Shown: piece after piece, positions 2,894 through 62,836 of the stretch | Layout of the letters: every line of letters begins with the position of its first letter | How positions within the stretch are numbered: position 1 is the stretch's first letter | Source: Botryllus schlosseri | Lineage: Eukaryota | Direction of reading: 5' to 3' | NCBI GenBank assembly: GCA_051294905.1 | Contig: CM119381.1 | Location: forward strand, 18,476,001-18,540,000 | DNA length: 64,000 bases | Notes under the pieces: generated by a model | What the model saw: the letters and a program-made list of their open reading frames with translations, nothing else | What the model was told of the DNA's origin: nothing | Database searches by the model: none | Translations under genes and position numbers: made by a program

Positions 2894-20817
<17,924 letters not shown>

Positions 20818-56395: not shown

Positions 56396-57555
56396 CGTAA
56401 TGGACTGCCTGGTCGCTTGTCACTGCCGATTTTGTACCTTTTTCCATATCCTCAATAATAGTGCATTAATATCAATTGAAATGGATGGTATTCATGGCTA
56501 GGAATTTTCAATACTACTGTGTTCTTACAAAGTTATTCATGTGCACATTTTGCAGTATTTTTTCGGTGCGGATTACAAATGTGGTGAATCCATATTAACA
56601 ATTTACGCTTTATTGCGAAAGACCAACCATGGACTGTGATGACAGCTTTAGTTGACAAAGAATTACTCTGATACCGTTGCTTCAACATCCAAACGTATGT
56701 TTTGGTATCATGGTCAGCACTGATAAATTCTACTCATGAACTTTAACAAAAATTCTGCTTTTTTGAAATTGCAATTCTATGAACATGCTGAAAAGTTGTA
56801 ACAATGCAGGAGATGATGTGGTGATACCGTTCTTTTCATATTGAATAATAATTATGCATTTCACTGTTATGAGTAATTTTAAGGTACATTTTTCTGAGGC
56901 AGAATCTTGAGAAGCATGTACTAAATTGTACCAGAGCCTGTCATACAAGTCCGGTATAGGACTGTCATTCCTCCTACCCAATGAAATATTGGTCATCCCA
57001 AACTTCCTTACTTCAACCAACCAATCAGGATGCAATTGCGCATACATCACCCGAACTACGATATGCATGGGTGGATTGTAAGCTCATCAGGCTACTACAA
57101 CTTCCATGATTCTGTCATTACAATAGGCCTACTTGCTCGCATTTGAAGAGAAATTACTTTTATAACTTTGTCCAACTATCACGCGATTTTGAGATTTATA
57201 CGGGAGTATAGTTTGAAAATTCTACCTACCTCTATATAGCACGATCAGCTGTTCTGCACTAATTCACTTGGACAAAATACATTGGAATGATATTGCAGTT
57301 GACTTCACTGCTCGATGGCATCCTGTCATGCATTGTTGCGAGAGGATTTTATGACCACATCTTCTACAATAAGCTACCGCATATGCAGCTATTATATTAA
57401 CAGAAGGGTGCTAACTTCACACTGTTGATTGAACGGCTGATAAGAACACTTGAAGAATTTGAGGTGCAGCAGTCGATAGGCCTGGCGTTGAAATGTGCAT
57501 GTCGCAGGTCGAAAGTGAAATATTGCTACGCTGTAAGCATATCTTACAAAAAGTC

Positions 57556-57561
57556 TTTATT
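57556..57561 (-). promoter_or_regulatory. Candidate polyadenylation signal of CAAP1 (end of the three-gene unit)
   Basis: AATAAA on the minus strand about 63 nt after the CAAP1 stop; I saw no such signal at the BORCS7-LYRM or LYRM-CAAP1 junctions. Confidence 0.55.
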
Positions 57562-57623
57562 ACATAATTCGTGACAGAAGATCTTGATTACATTCATCAG
57601 GCCAATGAAAAAAGATGATTTAA

Positions 57624-60176
57624 TCAAGGTTTTGTTGGCATAGGCTTCAGTGAACAGGCTTTGGCCGCCTTCATCAATGATCTTATAGCTCGTGCTCTAA
57701 GTTCCAACTCCAGTATTTCCAGTTGGGTTTTGCCGGCGTATTCTTCAGACTTGTCGTCACCACTATAAGTATCCTCGTCGTGGACGTCCTCGTTTTCAAC
57801 GTCAGCGATTACTTCGAATGCCTCTTCAATCTCTTCTACTTCCTCCACGAGAACTTCATCTATTTCTGGTGCCGTGTCTTTTACTGCTGGATTCTGGAAT
57901 CAATAGTGTGTTTGAATCACGTCAATGACAGACTTCAAGTTGACTTTCTAACAAAACGATCATGAAAGAGGAGAATAGAACTGTGACAACTGATCTAGAA
58001 ATTCGACAGTTTGGAGTTGCTTCTGGTCACTCAAACGATGGGCAAGGTTACTGTTACTTGCGCCGAAACATGACGTAGGTATTTCAAAGATTTGTCTAAA
58101 CTGGTTTACATGTCATAATATCGTTGTACCATCCACACACTGATGTTAGGTTTTGACTGATACCGAACCTTGCACTAATCAGAAGATGTCCCTGAATGAG
58201 GTGTAACTGGTGATGCGTTTAGCTGTGCTATTGGTTTTCGATTTAGCTAAGCTTAAGTGCGGTAATAAAGGGGATTAAAGCAACAAAATCGCTAAATTAT
58301 ATATGTGCTATGTGCCACCATTGCACATGATTATTGCACTGTGTGTAGGCCGAATTCCATATTCGAGAAGTGTCTCAACAGCCATTACACATTCCGTGCT
58401 AGCAAACAATGCGTTGGCATTGCAAACATTCTAGTGGTAGCAATATTTTTTGATATGAAGGGGGCACGAAATTTTTCACTATCATCAAGGTCAAGGGAAG
58501 TTTGAGAACCACTGGTATAACGTGTATTCAAGCTAGTTTTAATAAATTGATTTGGTCAACGCATTGTTTTAGCAGTTAGTCGGAGGTGGCTACTTTTGTA
58601 ATTTCAAGCGCATACACACAATGGCTAATGAAGCTAAAAATAGAATAATATAATGACATCGGACAGCGAAAATATTCGGTTTCATTTCAAGATGAATGTA
58701 GCCTATTAGCAACGTTCCCTCTAAGCTGCGCAATTGCGCAGTGCTGACACGGTCTCAGCGCACAGAAAATCTAAGCTGCGCACAAAAAATCCGAAGTGTT
58801 GTCCTTTTTTTAGTCGTTGCGCACTTTTGTTCAATGGATGCGTAGTAAGTTGGTGAGTGCGCGCAGACTCGCCAAAAATTAGAGGGAACATTGCCTATTA
58901 GCCTGCACATTGTATATTGAAGTTCTGTACCGCCAAGTGTCTCTTCAGAAACTAAAAATAAGTACAATTTCGAAAAATGTCTTCCGTTATAGTGGTTAGG
59001 CTATTTCGCCAGGTATTTTCGCAAACATTTCCCAAAACTGCTTTCTACGATACAAAATCTCAAGTTTGGAACGCGAGTAGTTTTTCTAATAAACTGTTCA
59101 GATGTCAAAGTCCACTAAAATAAAATGACACGACTAAACAGCCAAAACCTCAAGTAGGCTACTCCAAAATAGAAATCGTTCGCTAGTGACGCCATATGTT
59201 GATACCTCATTAGTACAGACTTTTTTCAAATACCATCAAGTGAAATACTTACCATTTTACTAAATGGACTGCGATGCACTGTTTCCTCATCACTACTTGA
59301 GATAGAATGAAGTTCCCCATCTTCGGCCTCATAATTCCCATATTCGGTGTCTTTAGCAATACTAGATGTTTCCGCATTAGTTTTGACAGACAGGGAGGTC
59401 GAAACATTGTCTATTTCACTGTGAATTGGTTGATGTGTATCATTTTCATGTACATTGCATTGAGCAGTATTTATAGCGGAGGGAAATAGCATTGATGGAC
59501 CAGTCGCATCACTAGTGGTTGAATCTACGAGATTGGTCTGTAACACATTATCTTGACGTCTGACATTCGGTTTCCGCTTTTTCCTAGACTTTCTTTCATC
59601 ATCCGACGAGTCCGTTCCAGAAGAAGAATCCATACTCATACCCGTCAAGACATGAAGAAGCCTTTTTGAAGACATAACAGTCAAATGCTCTCTACATAAT
59701 TGCTTGATTTGATCCAAAGGCATGGGTTTTAGCGTGTCAGGCAACATGGCAGTAAGCTTCGAGCCTTGGATGATTGAGAAAGCAGTTTCCAACAAGACAT
59801 CCCTGTCTTTAATCAAACTCGTCAGAGAAGACAGCGGCTTGGACAAGTCAAGATCGTCCGCGTCAAAATCTGAATCATCTTTCTGTTTTTTATGATCATG
59901 GCCGGAAGACTTTCCACTGTGACGTCTTTTAGAAGGTTTCCGACCTTCCTCCACTGTTCTCTTGGCTTTAGAGGACTGTGACGAAGATGCTTTTGTCCTT
60001 TCTTTGGGCCGAGTGGAATGCTTTTTGTGCACTCTCTCTTTTTTAGAACCATCATCAACCGATGACCTGCGCCGCTTGCTATTCTTTTTATCACTTATGT
60101 TTTTTTTCATTTCTTTGGTGAACTGCTCAAGACGGTCGGGGTTTACGGAAAGGACAGCGCGCTGGAACGCCGACAT
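57624..60176 (-). CDS. CAAP1: Caspase activity and apoptosis inhibitor 1 (CAAP1/C9orf82) homolog, 2 exons, ~397 aa
   Basis: Exon 1 60176-59253 (ATG|GTAAGT donor), exon 2 57893-57624 (ttccag acceptor, phase 0). The core LDLSKPLSSLTSLIKDRDVLLETAFSIIQGSKLTAMLPDTLKPMPLDQIKQLCREHL and the C-terminal QLEILELELRARAIRSLMKA match the recalled human ..LDLTVSLKP..KKLQKMLPDVLK..IKKLCQEQL and QLELLELEMRARAIKALMKA. Confidence 0.92.
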
Positions 60177-60179
60177 GAG

Positions 60180-60395
60180 TCACAGAAGCTTGCCGTGCTT
60201 GTCTTCTAAGAAGTGAAATCCTTTGTCGAGTTGCCTTTGCCTTTCTTTCGGCGACTCAACCTTCATATAATGACGGAATTCCTTCCGAATGTAATTGAAA
60301 TAATATTCCTTTTCGGTGTATTTTAAATCAGTGAGACCCTTTGATAGAAGCTGTTTGTATAAACTCAGTACAGCACGTTTACTCCACTTAACCAT
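60180..60395 (-). CDS. MIURF: LYR-motif mitochondrial microprotein, AltMIEF1/AltMiD51 (MIURF) ortholog, 71 aa
   Basis: MVKWSKRAVLSLYKQLLSKGLTDLKYTEKEYYFNYIRKEFRHYMKVESPKERQRQLDKGFHFLEDKHGKLL aligns end to end with the recalled human [70 protein letters not shown]. LYR-like LYK plus downstream F; good Kozak context (gcaATGg). Confidence 0.9.
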   Translation of the reverse strand: MVKWSKRAVLSLYKQLLSKGLTDLKYTEKEYYFNYIRKEFRHYMKVESPKERQRQLDKGFHFLEDKHGKLL

Positions 60396-60421
60396 TGCTC
60401 GAAACAAAGAGTAATGGGAGA

Positions 60422-61967
60422 TCACTGACTACAAGATCGATGATCGCGGTTTGCGATCAAGTGGTTCAAGCTTAGAAGCTGTTCGTGAACGTTGCCGGTG
60501 GTTTCAAGGCTTTTTTGTATTGCTTCTTGTTGATATGAGAGGTGTACTGCTAGTGCCGAAAGCTTGTGAAACGTATTTTCAGTGCTGGAGATGCTTTGGT
60601 CCGTGGAAGCAAAAGCCTTGGAAGCTTGAGATAAGAGTTCGGACGTTTTACTTCCCTGAAATTTAGTATAGCTTACAAGTCATGAATGGATATCAACTTT
60701 CCAGACCCATAAAAATATTCAAGCATAACATGTACAGTAGGGCTGTTAAAAAAAACTTTTTACCCCAAATCTTGCTCGCTACGTGATTAAATCGTCAGGC
60801 TGCCTGAAAAAAACGATGCACACTAAATTTAACTCTATTTCAACCAGTAGATGTCGAGTTCTTTCAGATTGATATTTCGGTCATTTTTTAAATAATAGTA
60901 TTTACGGTGACAAATTTAGTCATTCTGACATGACCAAAAATCTTGTTACAGGTATGCCTGAAGAGGCAGGGATGTCTTTTCCACTCGTTTCTATCTTGAC
61001 AAGGGCCTATTGTGGAGTTTGGATGGAGACATCTCCAGTTAACGAAAATTGAAACAACACAGATCAGCTGCTGGAAATTAGTCCACTTCATCCAAATAGT
61101 CACATTAAAAGGATGGTGTGATAATGATCTAGGGACTAGTGATATTTTTAGCGACTTTTGAAAAGTATTTAGCGATATTCTAGCAATTTTTTTCAAAAAT
61201 ATCCGAAATCAGTCGATTTTGAGCAGCGAACATCATGCACATTCACAATATCATATGTGCGCCACAACCGCCGATCTGCATTCAGGCCACGTTCACGTGC
61301 ATGGATATGAACGTCTTTTCCAGTGGTTCCAAGCGTGGGCGATATCACCAGTGATCCAGTGAAATATATTTATAATTAACACGGTCAAAAAATGCAAGTG
61401 AAGATGGCCTGTAAGGCTATAATGCATACGATGCGAAAAAGGGTCCACTTAACGGAAACTAGACGCGGAAATCAATTTTCCGAGCACCTTACCACCTCGG
61501 AAAATGGCCTTTCATAGTATATTCACCAGCCATCAGAGTTAGGTAAATAAATTTCCCGATTACGCGATTATATGTCCTCTTTTTCGGATCCATAAATATG
61601 CCCCCCCCCCCCCGGGCGAAAATGTGTGGCGAGATTGATAAGGGGGCGATGAGTCGAAACAGGTTGGGAACCACTGATATAGACAAAGCTAAAGTGAAGG
61701 GCAGACAGCTTGACTTGACCTATGTCAAAACACACATGAGATGAGGAGACGCGTTATGTTACGGTATATTTTGACTATGGGTCGTCAGTGAGATTATTAT
61801 AACCGAACGAATGCACTCGCAGTTATAAAATCAATTTTTCAACTTACCTTTGACACTTGCTTGAACAAAGCCGATACGTCAGCCAAGTTTGTCTGTAATT
61901 GGTTAGCGAATTGAACGTTCGGGATTCCAGAAACGTGTGCAGATTGACCTCCAACAGCGATGTTCAT
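60422..61967 (-). CDS. BORCS7: BLOC-1-related complex subunit 7 (BORCS7/C10orf32) homolog, 2 exons, ~117 aa (absent from the ORF track)
   Basis: Exon 1 61967-61848 (MNIAVGG...LADVSALFKQVSK|gtaagt), exon 2 60655-60422 (tttcag|GSKTSELLSQASKAFASTDQSISSTENTFHKLSALAVHLSYQQEAIQKSLETTGNVHEQL...*). Matches the recalled human TDVIALTKQVLKGSRSSELLGQAARNMVLQEDAILHSEDSLRKMAIITTHLQYQQEAIQKNVEQSSDLQDQL. The exact start codon is somewhat uncertain. Confidence 0.9.
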
Positions 61968-62836
61968 CACCAATTCATCAACACTAACCAATATCTTACG
62001 CCAACAAAGAGTAGAGACAAGGACAATAAAATGCCAAAACTACAAGGACAGTCAAGAAACAGCAAAGCTGCGAACGCAACGCAATGCAAAATGCAATGCA
62101 CCAACTGCAAACTGGAGGCGGAGGCTCGTCAATGTAAGCATGTACCACATGTATTAGCTGTATCAGTATTTGTGGTGGTCCCACAAAACACAGCCATTCC
62201 TCTTCGGTTTCTATAAACATTTAACCCAATATCATAAATTAAAAATTAAAAAATCCGATACTTTCAATTTCTAACCGCCCCACTTTTTACACAGACTTGG
62301 TTATAAATTTCATGAGCAAAGCACGATTGTGAGCCTCAAATTTCGAACACTGAATGCATCAACTACATAATAGTATATGTTATGTATGTTAGGTACAGTG
62401 CCGACTGCCGAGACAGTGACAACTCTGGTGCAGAAAGCTCAAGAGAAACCTTCGACTATTAATAGGTAGGCTACTCATCACGCAGAGAGGGTGGGCGAAG
62501 GCTGCTGCACTGATTCATATCGTGATTGTCACGCTGCATTGGTATCGGATTAATATCGTTACACCATGATATTCCATTCATAAATGGCTACAGCCACTGA
62601 GCTATATAAACACAGCACCAAAACTATGAGGTCGCGCCATGTTTGCATTTTGTGCTTATCATAAAGTTAATGTCATCGACAATGGAATTCTCGTCCTCGT
62701 AGTAGGTCTTAGGTCAAGGAAGAAACTTGCATTTTGTGGCGTTATGTTCGCTACTTGAAGTTTTGATTTGTTCTTATGCCTCAGAGACTGTGAAGCGGAC
62801 CAAAAACCGCGGGCTCAAAATAACCCATATGCGCAC

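Follow-up and report, generated by a model that had tools for sequence, protein, structure and literature searches.

Termination-reinitiation at adjoining stop and start codons is known from calicivirus VP1/VP2 and influenza B M1/BM2. In vertebrates, the mRNA of MIEF1 (MiD51/SMCR7L) is bicistronic, and its LYR upstream open reading frame (ORF), AltMIEF1, is translated (PMC4383229, PMC5703645). The spliced leader (SL) operons of Ciona and Oikopleura have near-zero intercistronic DNA and no canonical AATAAA between cistrons, and their unresolved polycistronic RNA is detectable (PMC1488885). In green algal bicistrons, leaky scanning through an AUG-poor first ORF has been demonstrated by mutation (PMC11892635). 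The locus described here lies in a stretch of 64,000 nucleotides (nt) from the tunicate Botryllus schlosseri (GenBank assembly GCA_051294905.1, contig CM119381.1, positions 18,476,001 to 18,540,000), which is called the window in this text and whose positions are counted from its first letter. It consists of three genes on the minus strand, in the order BORCS7, an AltMIEF1-type ORF with a LYR motif (LYR ORF), and CAAP1, with spacers of 26 nt and 3 nt. RNA data support the co-transcription of BORCS7, the LYR ORF, and CAAP1, and the evidence inclines toward a mature tricistronic mRNA that is translated as such. The literature searched, with subscription journals outside its coverage, holds no description of a BORCS7-AltMIEF1-CAAP1 unit; an earlier note on this DNA had likewise known of none.

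The unit resembles the vertebrate MIEF1 mRNA in that the same microprotein of ~70 codons is encoded by an upstream cistron, which is followed by a larger, unrelated ORF. However, the downstream partner in tunicates is CAAP1, BORCS7 stands in front so that the microprotein is the middle cistron, and the spacer between the LYR ORF and the downstream ORF is 3 to 4 nt in most tunicates. The vertebrate and tunicate polycistronic states are probably independent captures, because AltMIEF1 stands alone in amphioxus and in a hemichordate. With the operons of Ciona and Oikopleura, the unit shares the animal group, the same-strand order of the cistrons, the tight packing, and the unrelated housekeeping functions of the products. 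Since lysosome positioning, mitoribosome large-subunit assembly, and apoptosis control are unrelated, the unit appears to couple expression rather than function. In contrast to those operons, even the untranslated regions (UTRs) between cistrons are missing (a stop-to-start distance of 3 nt), the second boundary is without an acceptor, the upstream cistrons are purged of AUGs, and there is no 3'-tag sign of separate polyadenylation of BORCS7.

Four sequencing runs were aligned to positions 57300 to 62400 of the window, namely, bulk RNA (X23), RNA contigs (X1), a 3'-biased single-cell library (X21), and DNA (X15). The joint that removes the BORCS7 intron (60654/61847) was present in 16 X23 reads and one X1 contig, and that of the CAAP1 intron (57893/59253) was present in an X1 contig of 812 nt. 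Another X1 contig, of 671 nt, joins 61913-61847 to 60654-60051 and contains both BORCS7 exons and the entire LYR ORF, extending 125 nt into CAAP1. Cis-spliced RNA spans the ORFs in the relatives as well, with three complete ORFs in each of the RNA contigs L001, L002, and L003. The X23 depth, read at single nucleotide polymorphism (SNP) sites, was 25 to 32 in BORCS7 exon 1, 27 to 38 in exon 2, and 38 in the LYR ORF; in CAAP1 it was 27 at 60168 and 13 to 17 further into the body, with no gap at either junction. Because the depth was 35 to 36 at the SNP sites flanking the first spacer (60389 and 60418), coverage is continuous over its 26 nt. On the 5' flank, the RNA depth was 0 above 62088, with a mean of ~6 in the bin 61917-62087 and a value of 25 at 61931, and on the 3' flank it was 0 to 1.2 below 57470. 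The unit thus stands alone, with zero RNA depth upstream and near-zero depth downstream. The single tricistronic transcript proposed in the earlier note is supported by the continuous depth, the spliced 671-nt contig, and the three-ORF RNA contigs of the three relatives. At the level of short reads and contigs, the locus is one transcription unit, whose 5' end lies near 61970-61995 and which has two cis-spliced introns and a single poly(A) signal, after CAAP1.

The main 3'-tag peak of X21 (196x in 57642-57812, with 56x in 57471-57641) lies 100 to 280 nt upstream of the AATAAA of the unit. Its second and only internal peak, of 58x, lies over the LYR ORF (60207-60377), ~106 nt upstream of a genomic A8 run (60107-60100). 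Because the main peak has the same offset from its poly(A) site, the internal peak fits oligo-dT priming on the A8 run and is read in this way, without proof. A real poly(A) site within CAAP1 near 60100, raised by the internal peak together with the 2:1 depth in X23, was set aside rather than excluded because the offset from the A8 run fits, X23 comes from a divergent haplotype, and the depth ratio in X1 is opposite to that in X23. In X23, 92% of the reads align over only part of their length and fixed SNPs are numerous, and this divergence makes its lower CAAP1 depth unreliable as a sign of a shorter isoform. Over BORCS7 exon 2 (bins in 60378-60719, covering the 300 nt upstream of 60398), the X21 depth was 3 to 11 versus 196 at the true 3' end, and this one library contains no 3'-tag peak for a separate BORCS7 mRNA ending at 60398. 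Among the best-supported clusters listed, beyond which there are 122 further ones, no cluster of read ends or loose ends was found at 60398 or 60205. The only listed site at which many molecules begin or end is 60387, with 5 X23 molecules at a depth of 20. This site lies 11 nt downstream of the acceptor-like cgag/ (the slash marks the boundary) and beside the fixed SNP at 60389, and the ends may be clipped trans-spliced reads or chance. In addition, three single-cell reads join 60595 (in BORCS7) to 57728 (in the last exon of CAAP1) with noncanonical ends (TT..GC), which is probably template switching.

The gene identities given in the earlier note (BORCS7, an AltMIEF1-type LYR protein, and CAAP1) are correct, with all three products above their Pfam cut-offs. 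BORCS7 matched PF16088 on exon 2 alone (E=8.4e-15; 55.3 bits versus a cut-off of 27.3), the LYR ORF matched Complex1_LYR PF05347 (E=3.1e-8; 33.9 bits versus 24.8), and CAAP1 matched PF15335 (E=3.5e-16; 59.8 bits versus 25). A phmmer search of the PDB with the LYR ORF returned 5ool_v and 28 further entries, with an E value of 1e-16 and query residues 1 to 70 aligned with chain residues 1 to 69, and a PDB search with BORCS7 returned no solved relative. By this full-length match, the LYR ORF is the end-to-end orthologue of human AltMIEF1/L0R8F8, a LYR protein on mitoribosomal large-subunit intermediates. AltMIEF1 belongs to the LYRM family and forms an assembly module of the mitoribosome large subunit with MALSU1 and mt-ACP, both of which the protein encoded in the window would be expected to bind there. 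The LYR motif of the microprotein is L12-Y13-K14 with a conserved Phe (F40); L12, Y13, and F40 are invariant across a 13-sequence alignment. The closest named relatives that the searches returned were proteins of Styela clava, which places the window in an ascidian-type tunicate. The CAAP1 of the window has 45% identity to the Styela clava CAAP1-like protein (P0005), and the two have the C-terminal LEILELELRARAIRSLMKAA motif in common. The BORCS7 of L001 is 70% identical to that of the window and 61% identical to the NCBI-named S. clava BORCS7-like protein. By exact look-up, the LYR protein of the window is absent from protein records, and the microprotein is without a called gene on record. 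Word-based homologue searches returned just 1, 5, and 2 hits, a sensitivity too low for a taxon survey. At many positions in the unit, the animals sequenced carry letters other than those of the assembly. One SNP, at 60389, replaces K with Q at LYR residue 3, as found in every close relative, and another, at 60332, turns residue 22 from T into A; all X23 reads carry both variants, and about two-thirds (60332) and half (60389) of the X21 reads carry them.

Comparison with related genomes, named as a check in the earlier note, revealed the order BORCS7-LYR-CAAP1 in five other sources, namely, L001, L002, L003, S. clava, and the metagenomic contig L005. The first and second spacers are 31 nt and 3 nt in the spliced RNA contig L001 (BORCS7 at 46-402, LYR at 434-649, and CAAP1 at 653-1882), 58 nt and 40 nt in the spliced RNA contig L002, and 6 nt and 4 nt in L003, a spliced contig from a JGI sample. 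In the S. clava chromosome record OZ123515.1 (L011), which was reached through its BORCS7 protein and has spacers of 53 nt and 22 nt, the BORCS7 intron interrupts the protein at the position seen in the window. The annotation there treats BORCS7 and CAAP1 as separate genes with a gap of 291 nt (L011 11258-11548), which holds a complete 71-codon LYR ORF (11311-11526) that is uncalled in the gene table for that locus. A contig of SRR25569784 contains a LYR ORF (P0001, 72% identical) at 2031-2258 and CAAP1 from 2262, again with a 3-nt spacer, and no BORCS7 was called upstream. L005 and four near-identical contigs come from metagenomes, which were also scanned with a 7-sequence alignment. The last exon of BORCS7 in L005 is followed by an ATG-free spacer of 138 nt and the LYR ORF (4231-4446). 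Two nucleotides after the LYR stop, a donor matches 8 of the 9 consensus positions (TAA-AG/GTGTGT, 4444-4452), and an acceptor ~1.9 kb from it lies 1 nt before the CAAP1 ATG (..gacgggcag/T-ATG, 6353-6365). Joining the two would rebuild a 3-nt spacer, AGT, and place the intron exactly within the inter-ORF spacer. L005 is taken to be a tunicate sequence because its LYR protein has a one-residue insertion that is shared with ascidian sequences and missing from nontunicate ones in the 13-sequence alignment.

The ratio of nonsynonymous to synonymous substitution rates (dN/dS) between the window and L001/L002 is ~0.13 for BORCS7 and CAAP1, with dS values that are >2 or not computable, and all three ORFs are under purifying selection. 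Because dS is saturated, synonymous sites are effectively independent between species, and the recurrence of the arrangement in five sources despite this saturation indicates that it is not due to chance. These comparisons suggest that the three-gene arrangement is old within tunicates. Within 10 kb of AltMIEF1, neither BORCS7 nor CAAP1 was found in the hemichordate Glandiceps (L009) or in amphioxus (L010), where AltMIEF1 is a stand-alone, intron-containing gene. The linkage is not universal, since contig L004 (587-1320), probably from a tunicate, has a LYR ORF (62% identical) without CAAP1. A POMGNT1-like gene with an ILEI domain starts 456 nt downstream in L004, acceptors lie before the LYR exon and 2 nt before the POMGNT1-like ATG, and there are ten ATGs in between, an arrangement suggestive of an ordinary gene pair or of an operon of the SL type.

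The 596 nt from the BORCS7 AUG to the CAAP1 AUG of the window contain just two ATGs, the LYR start and one in-frame LYR Met, and the LYR ORF has no out-of-frame ATG. In L001 (604 nt) and L003 (583 nt), the LYR start is the sole ATG in this corridor. Internal ATGs of BORCS7, in any frame, number 0 in the window, L001, L003, and the L005 exon. L002 and S. clava have an in-frame LYR Met and a mini-ORF of 4 to 5 codons in the first spacer, which ends 1 nt before the LYR AUG (L002 399-417; L011 11297-11310) and whose ATG is the only noncoding one tolerated in the corridor; L002 also has one in-frame Met in BORCS7. Synonymous resampling from the codon usage of the unit itself gave 3.5 expected ATGs versus 0 observed for the BORCS7 of the window (P=0.006), and 9.2 versus 1 for BORCS7 pooled over four species (P<1/3000). 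A stricter codon permutation, in which the codons of each ORF were shuffled, gave 16 expected ATGs versus 5 observed for both upstream ORFs pooled over five species (P<1/5000), and four of these five are in-frame Mets, which such shuffling cannot move. The CAAP1 body of the window is not depleted (33 observed versus 28 expected), and in the four CAAP1 coding sequences (CDSs) tested, no 354-nt window had <3 ATGs. Among 1269 windows of 596 nt sampled on the minus strand of the 64 kb, 0.08% had ≤2 ATGs, which amounts to about one window, presumably the BORCS7-LYR stretch itself. This AUG desert favors polycistronic translation, because selection against AUGs in the upstream cistrons would have no role if the cistrons were separated before translation, whereas it is expected where scanning ribosomes have to cross one ORF on the way to the next.

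The start contexts of the window are gtgATGa for BORCS7, gcaATGg for the LYR ORF, and ctcATGt for CAAP1. In all five species, the BORCS7 AUG is flanked by a purine at -3 and an A at +4. For the LYR AUG, a purine at -3 is combined with a G at +4 in five of six, a modest difference from the BORCS7 context. On the minus strand, no AATAAA occurs from 62980 down to 57561-57556, which is itself 63 nt past the CAAP1 stop, and no ATTAAA occurs between the BORCS7 start and 59813, ~580 nt into CAAP1. The remarks of the earlier note that the first AATAAA follows CAAP1 and that there is no promoter space or poly(A) signal between the ORFs therefore hold, and this AATAAA is the only copy in the unit. No AG is present in any LYR-CAAP1 spacer among the species compared, nor in the 6-nt first spacer of L003. 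With the Ciona leader ATTCTATTTGAATAAG as the query, no match was found at the 5' ends of L001 to L003 or in the listed loose ends; L001 begins with a Nextera adapter, and L002 is incomplete at its 5' end. A scan for bacterial-type promoters and terminators gave hits at chance level and was discarded as not relevant for a eukaryote.

Between the two routes offered in the earlier note, trans-splicing and polycistronic translation, the evidence leans to the latter. We favor, with modest confidence, translation of a mature tricistronic mRNA by leaky scanning and reinitiation because of the AUG desert, the AG-free LYR-CAAP1 spacers, the conserved distance of 3 to 4 nt, and the absence of a 3'-tag peak for BORCS7. 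BORCS7 would be translated from the first AUG, whose leader is very short and whose context has a purine at -3 and an A at +4. A fraction of the 43S complexes would pass over this AUG and scan ~530 AUG-free nt to the strong LYR AUG, with G at both -3 and +4. The CAAP1 AUG is in a weak context 3 nt past the LYR stop, where posttermination ribosomes could reinitiate on the spot; as an alternative or additional route, scanning complexes might miss both the LYR AUG and the single in-frame Met codon behind it.

This mechanism shares features with green algal polycistrons and with dicistronic genes of Drosophila such as Sloth1/Sloth2, including a short leader, an AUG-poor first ORF, a context that is better, here modestly so, at the next start, short inter-ORF gaps, and long conservation (PMC11892635, PMC7896298, PMC9681215). 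It differs from them in the kingdom or phylum, the number of cistrons (three), the occurrence in a lineage with SL trans-splicing, and a last cistron of 397 amino acids (aa) behind a strong AUG, which is poorly explained by leaky scanning alone. As in the reinitiation systems of caliciviruses and influenza B, the restart AUG lies a few nucleotides from the stop (3 to 4 nt in four or five of seven sources). In contrast to these systems, the spacers of S. clava and L002 measure 22 nt and 40 nt, and the last 60 nt of the LYR ORF contain no obvious motif resembling a termination upstream ribosome-binding site (TURBS) by eye, with no systematic search made.

Several observations weigh against translation of the intact tricistronic mRNA. 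Reinitiation after an ORF of 71 codons is usually inefficient, and the BORCS7 AUG, with G at -3, cannot be called weak. The BORCS7 of S. clava contains one out-of-frame ATG, and the first spacer of L002 and S. clava has the mini-ORF. Two sequences resemble acceptors, cgag/ (60398) ahead of the LYR AUG and cacttcttag/ (60206) at 35 nt upstream of the CAAP1 AUG, and the five X23 molecules that end at 60387 lie near the first of them. A minority of SL-capped molecules may be missing from the best-supported ends listed, and a 16-nt leader may be too short to appear among them. The depth ratio of CAAP1 to BORCS7/LYR is ~0.4 in X23 and ~1.5 in X1, and this difference between runs could reflect more than one RNA species, although X23 derives from a divergent haplotype. 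A mixed situation, in which some pre-mRNAs are trans-spliced before the LYR ORF to give a LYR-CAAP1 bicistron, is quite possible.

The chief alternative, which we consider appreciably less probable, is an SL-resolved operon of the Ciona type, in which the tricistronic RNA is mainly a precursor. Leader addition would take place at cgag/ (60398) and perhaps also at cttag/ (60206), the upstream mRNA would be polyadenylated at or near the acceptor, and the products would include an SL-LYR(-CAAP1) mRNA and an SL-CAAP1 mRNA. Tunicates have such operons, most without intercistronic DNA and many without AATAAA (PMC1488885), and the present locus resembles them in its same-strand cistrons <100 nt apart and in the RNA across both spacers. 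In the window, L001, L002, and S. clava, a pyrimidine-rich AG precedes the LYR AUG, but there is no AG in the first spacer of L003 or in the second spacer of any species, and use of an acceptor located within the LYR ORF would leave that molecule without an intact LYR ORF. The molecules ending at 60387, the internal X21 peak, and the varying depth ratios would also suit trans-splicing; however, the A8 run accounts for the internal peak, the best-supported ends and loose ends listed do not cluster at 60398 or 60205, and polyadenylation of BORCS7 next to 60398 was not encountered in the one 3'-tag library. The L005 acceptor that precedes the CAAP1 ATG by 1 nt could serve for SL addition, but a near-consensus cis donor directly follows the LYR stop in the same contig. 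Separation before translation predicts no selection against upstream AUGs, yet the strong desert recurs across saturated synonymous divergence.

It is improbable that the locus comprises three independent genes with promoters inside the upstream CDSs. The RNA that spans them would then be a by-product of read-through, which has been proposed for the fuhc pair of Botryllus. Neighboring tunicate genes are known to yield read-through transcripts (PMC3691228), and the CAAP1 depth in X1 exceeds that of BORCS7/LYR. However, spacers of 3 and 26 nt are too small for promoters, RNA coverage runs evenly and without a break from BORCS7 exon 1 across the LYR ORF, and no cluster of read starts was found inside the unit among the best-supported ones listed. 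In addition, six sources preserve the gene order and the close packing, even across the intron predicted in the spacer of L005, and the AUG desert would be left unexplained. A LYR-CAAP1 fusion protein made by stop codon readthrough of CTG-TGA-CTC-ATG is the least probable explanation and was rejected. UGA-C is a leaky stop context, and a 3-nt spacer keeps the two ORFs in frame in the window itself, in L001, in the contig of SRR25569784, and, if spliced, in L005. The spacers (3, 3, 3, 4, 22, and 40 nt) are not all in frame, however, since the 4 nt of L003, the 22 nt of S. clava, and the 40 nt of L002 are not multiples of three. The stop codon also varies among TGA, TAA, and TAG, and AltMIEF1 acts as a free 70-aa subunit in mitochondria, as seen in the PDB entries.

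The features of the unit are listed in Table 1. Conceptual exon joining gives proteins of 117 (BORCS7), 71 (LYR), and 397 aa (CAAP1), and the coordinates given earlier for the BORCS7 stop, the LYR ORF, the CAAP1 ATG, and the spacers are right to the base on the minus-strand sequence. The 5' leader has a pyrimidine tract and AG at 61995 and at 61984, either of which could be an SL acceptor or merely lie just downstream of the transcription start. A mini-uORF of 3 codons in the leader (ATG AAT TGG TGA, from 61978 to the TGA at 61969-61967) overlaps the BORCS7 start with its stop as TGATG, and it is inside the mRNA only if the 5' end lies far enough upstream. The repeats in the two introns have depths of >100,000 in the DNA run X15 and 190 to 226 in the RNA contigs, their borders carry many loose ends, and a G12 run lies at ~61611-61600.

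Table 1. Features of the BORCS7-LYR-CAAP1 unit (positions in the window)
Feature	Position	Strand	Details
5' leader	61968..61995	-	Short; 5' limit approximate
BORCS7 coding exon 1	61847..61967	-	121 nt; ATG 61967; phase-1 donor aag/gtaagt; RNA joint 60654/61847
BORCS7 intron	60655..61846	-	1192 nt; high-copy repeat ~61575-61745
BORCS7 coding part of 1402-nt middle exon	60422..60654	-	Stop TGA 60424-60422; Pfam PF16088
Spacer 1	60396..60421	-	26 nt, tctcccattactctttgtttcgagca; pyrimidine-rich; ends cgag/ca; ATG-free; resembles a splice acceptor
AltMIEF1/L0R8F8 orthologue (LYR ORF)	60180..60395	-	ATG 60395; TGA 60182-60180; 71 codons; PF05347
Spacer 2	60177..60179	-	3 nt, ctc; without AG; no space for RNA processing signals
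CAAP1 coding exon 1	59253..60176	-	ATG 60176; 308 codons; A8 run 60107-60100; PF15335
CAAP1 intron	57894..59252	-	1359 nt; high-copy repeat ~58668-59009
CAAP1 last coding exon	57624..57893	-	Stop 57626-57624
3' UTR	57535..57623	-	Only AATAAA of the unit, 57561-57556; downstream limit approximate

AltMIEF1-like ORFs also precede another gene. In two metagenomic contigs of low G+C content, L016 (220-1044; 36%) and L017 (144-915; 28%), such an ORF is followed on the same strand by an ORF with an RF-1 domain. The LYR ORF of L016 matched 5ool_v (E=7e-10), and the best solved relative of the RF-1-domain ORF of L017 is C12orf65/MTRFR (7a5h_C; E=2e-34). The MTRFR AUG lies 45 nt beyond the LYR stop in L016, and the gap in L017 is 95 nt in the raw ORF call, or ~24 nt with an apparent intron removed. 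Between the LYR AUG and the MTRFR AUG, neither L016 nor L017 contains an ATG (270 and 274 nt, respectively). These matches point to C12orf65/MTRFR as a third downstream partner of AltMIEF1, and PDB entry 7A5H contains both proteins. We tentatively suggest, as a wider view that may well not hold in full, that AltMIEF1 is a serial passenger cistron, carried as an upstream ORF on host mRNAs by way of an AUG-free corridor, and that the tunicate tricistronic mRNA is truly translated and escapes the SL machinery by which other operons of the same cells are resolved. The hosts would be MIEF1 in vertebrates, CAAP1 with BORCS7 in front in tunicates, and C12orf65/MTRFR in the source of the two low-G+C contigs.

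If this is true, a mitoribosome assembly factor of ~70 aa would lack a gene of its own in several animal lineages. Tunicate annotation misses the AltMIEF1 orthologue, as the uncalled ORF in the returned S. clava gene table illustrates. Tunicate polycistrons are taught as being resolved by SL trans-splicing, and the 3-nt spacing and the AUG desert point to a second way of expressing clustered genes. The unit offers a compact and testable model, since ascidian embryos accept electroporated reporters. With the same microprotein as an upstream cistron in vertebrates and tunicates, on mRNAs with different partners, microprotein hosting may become comparable across chordates.

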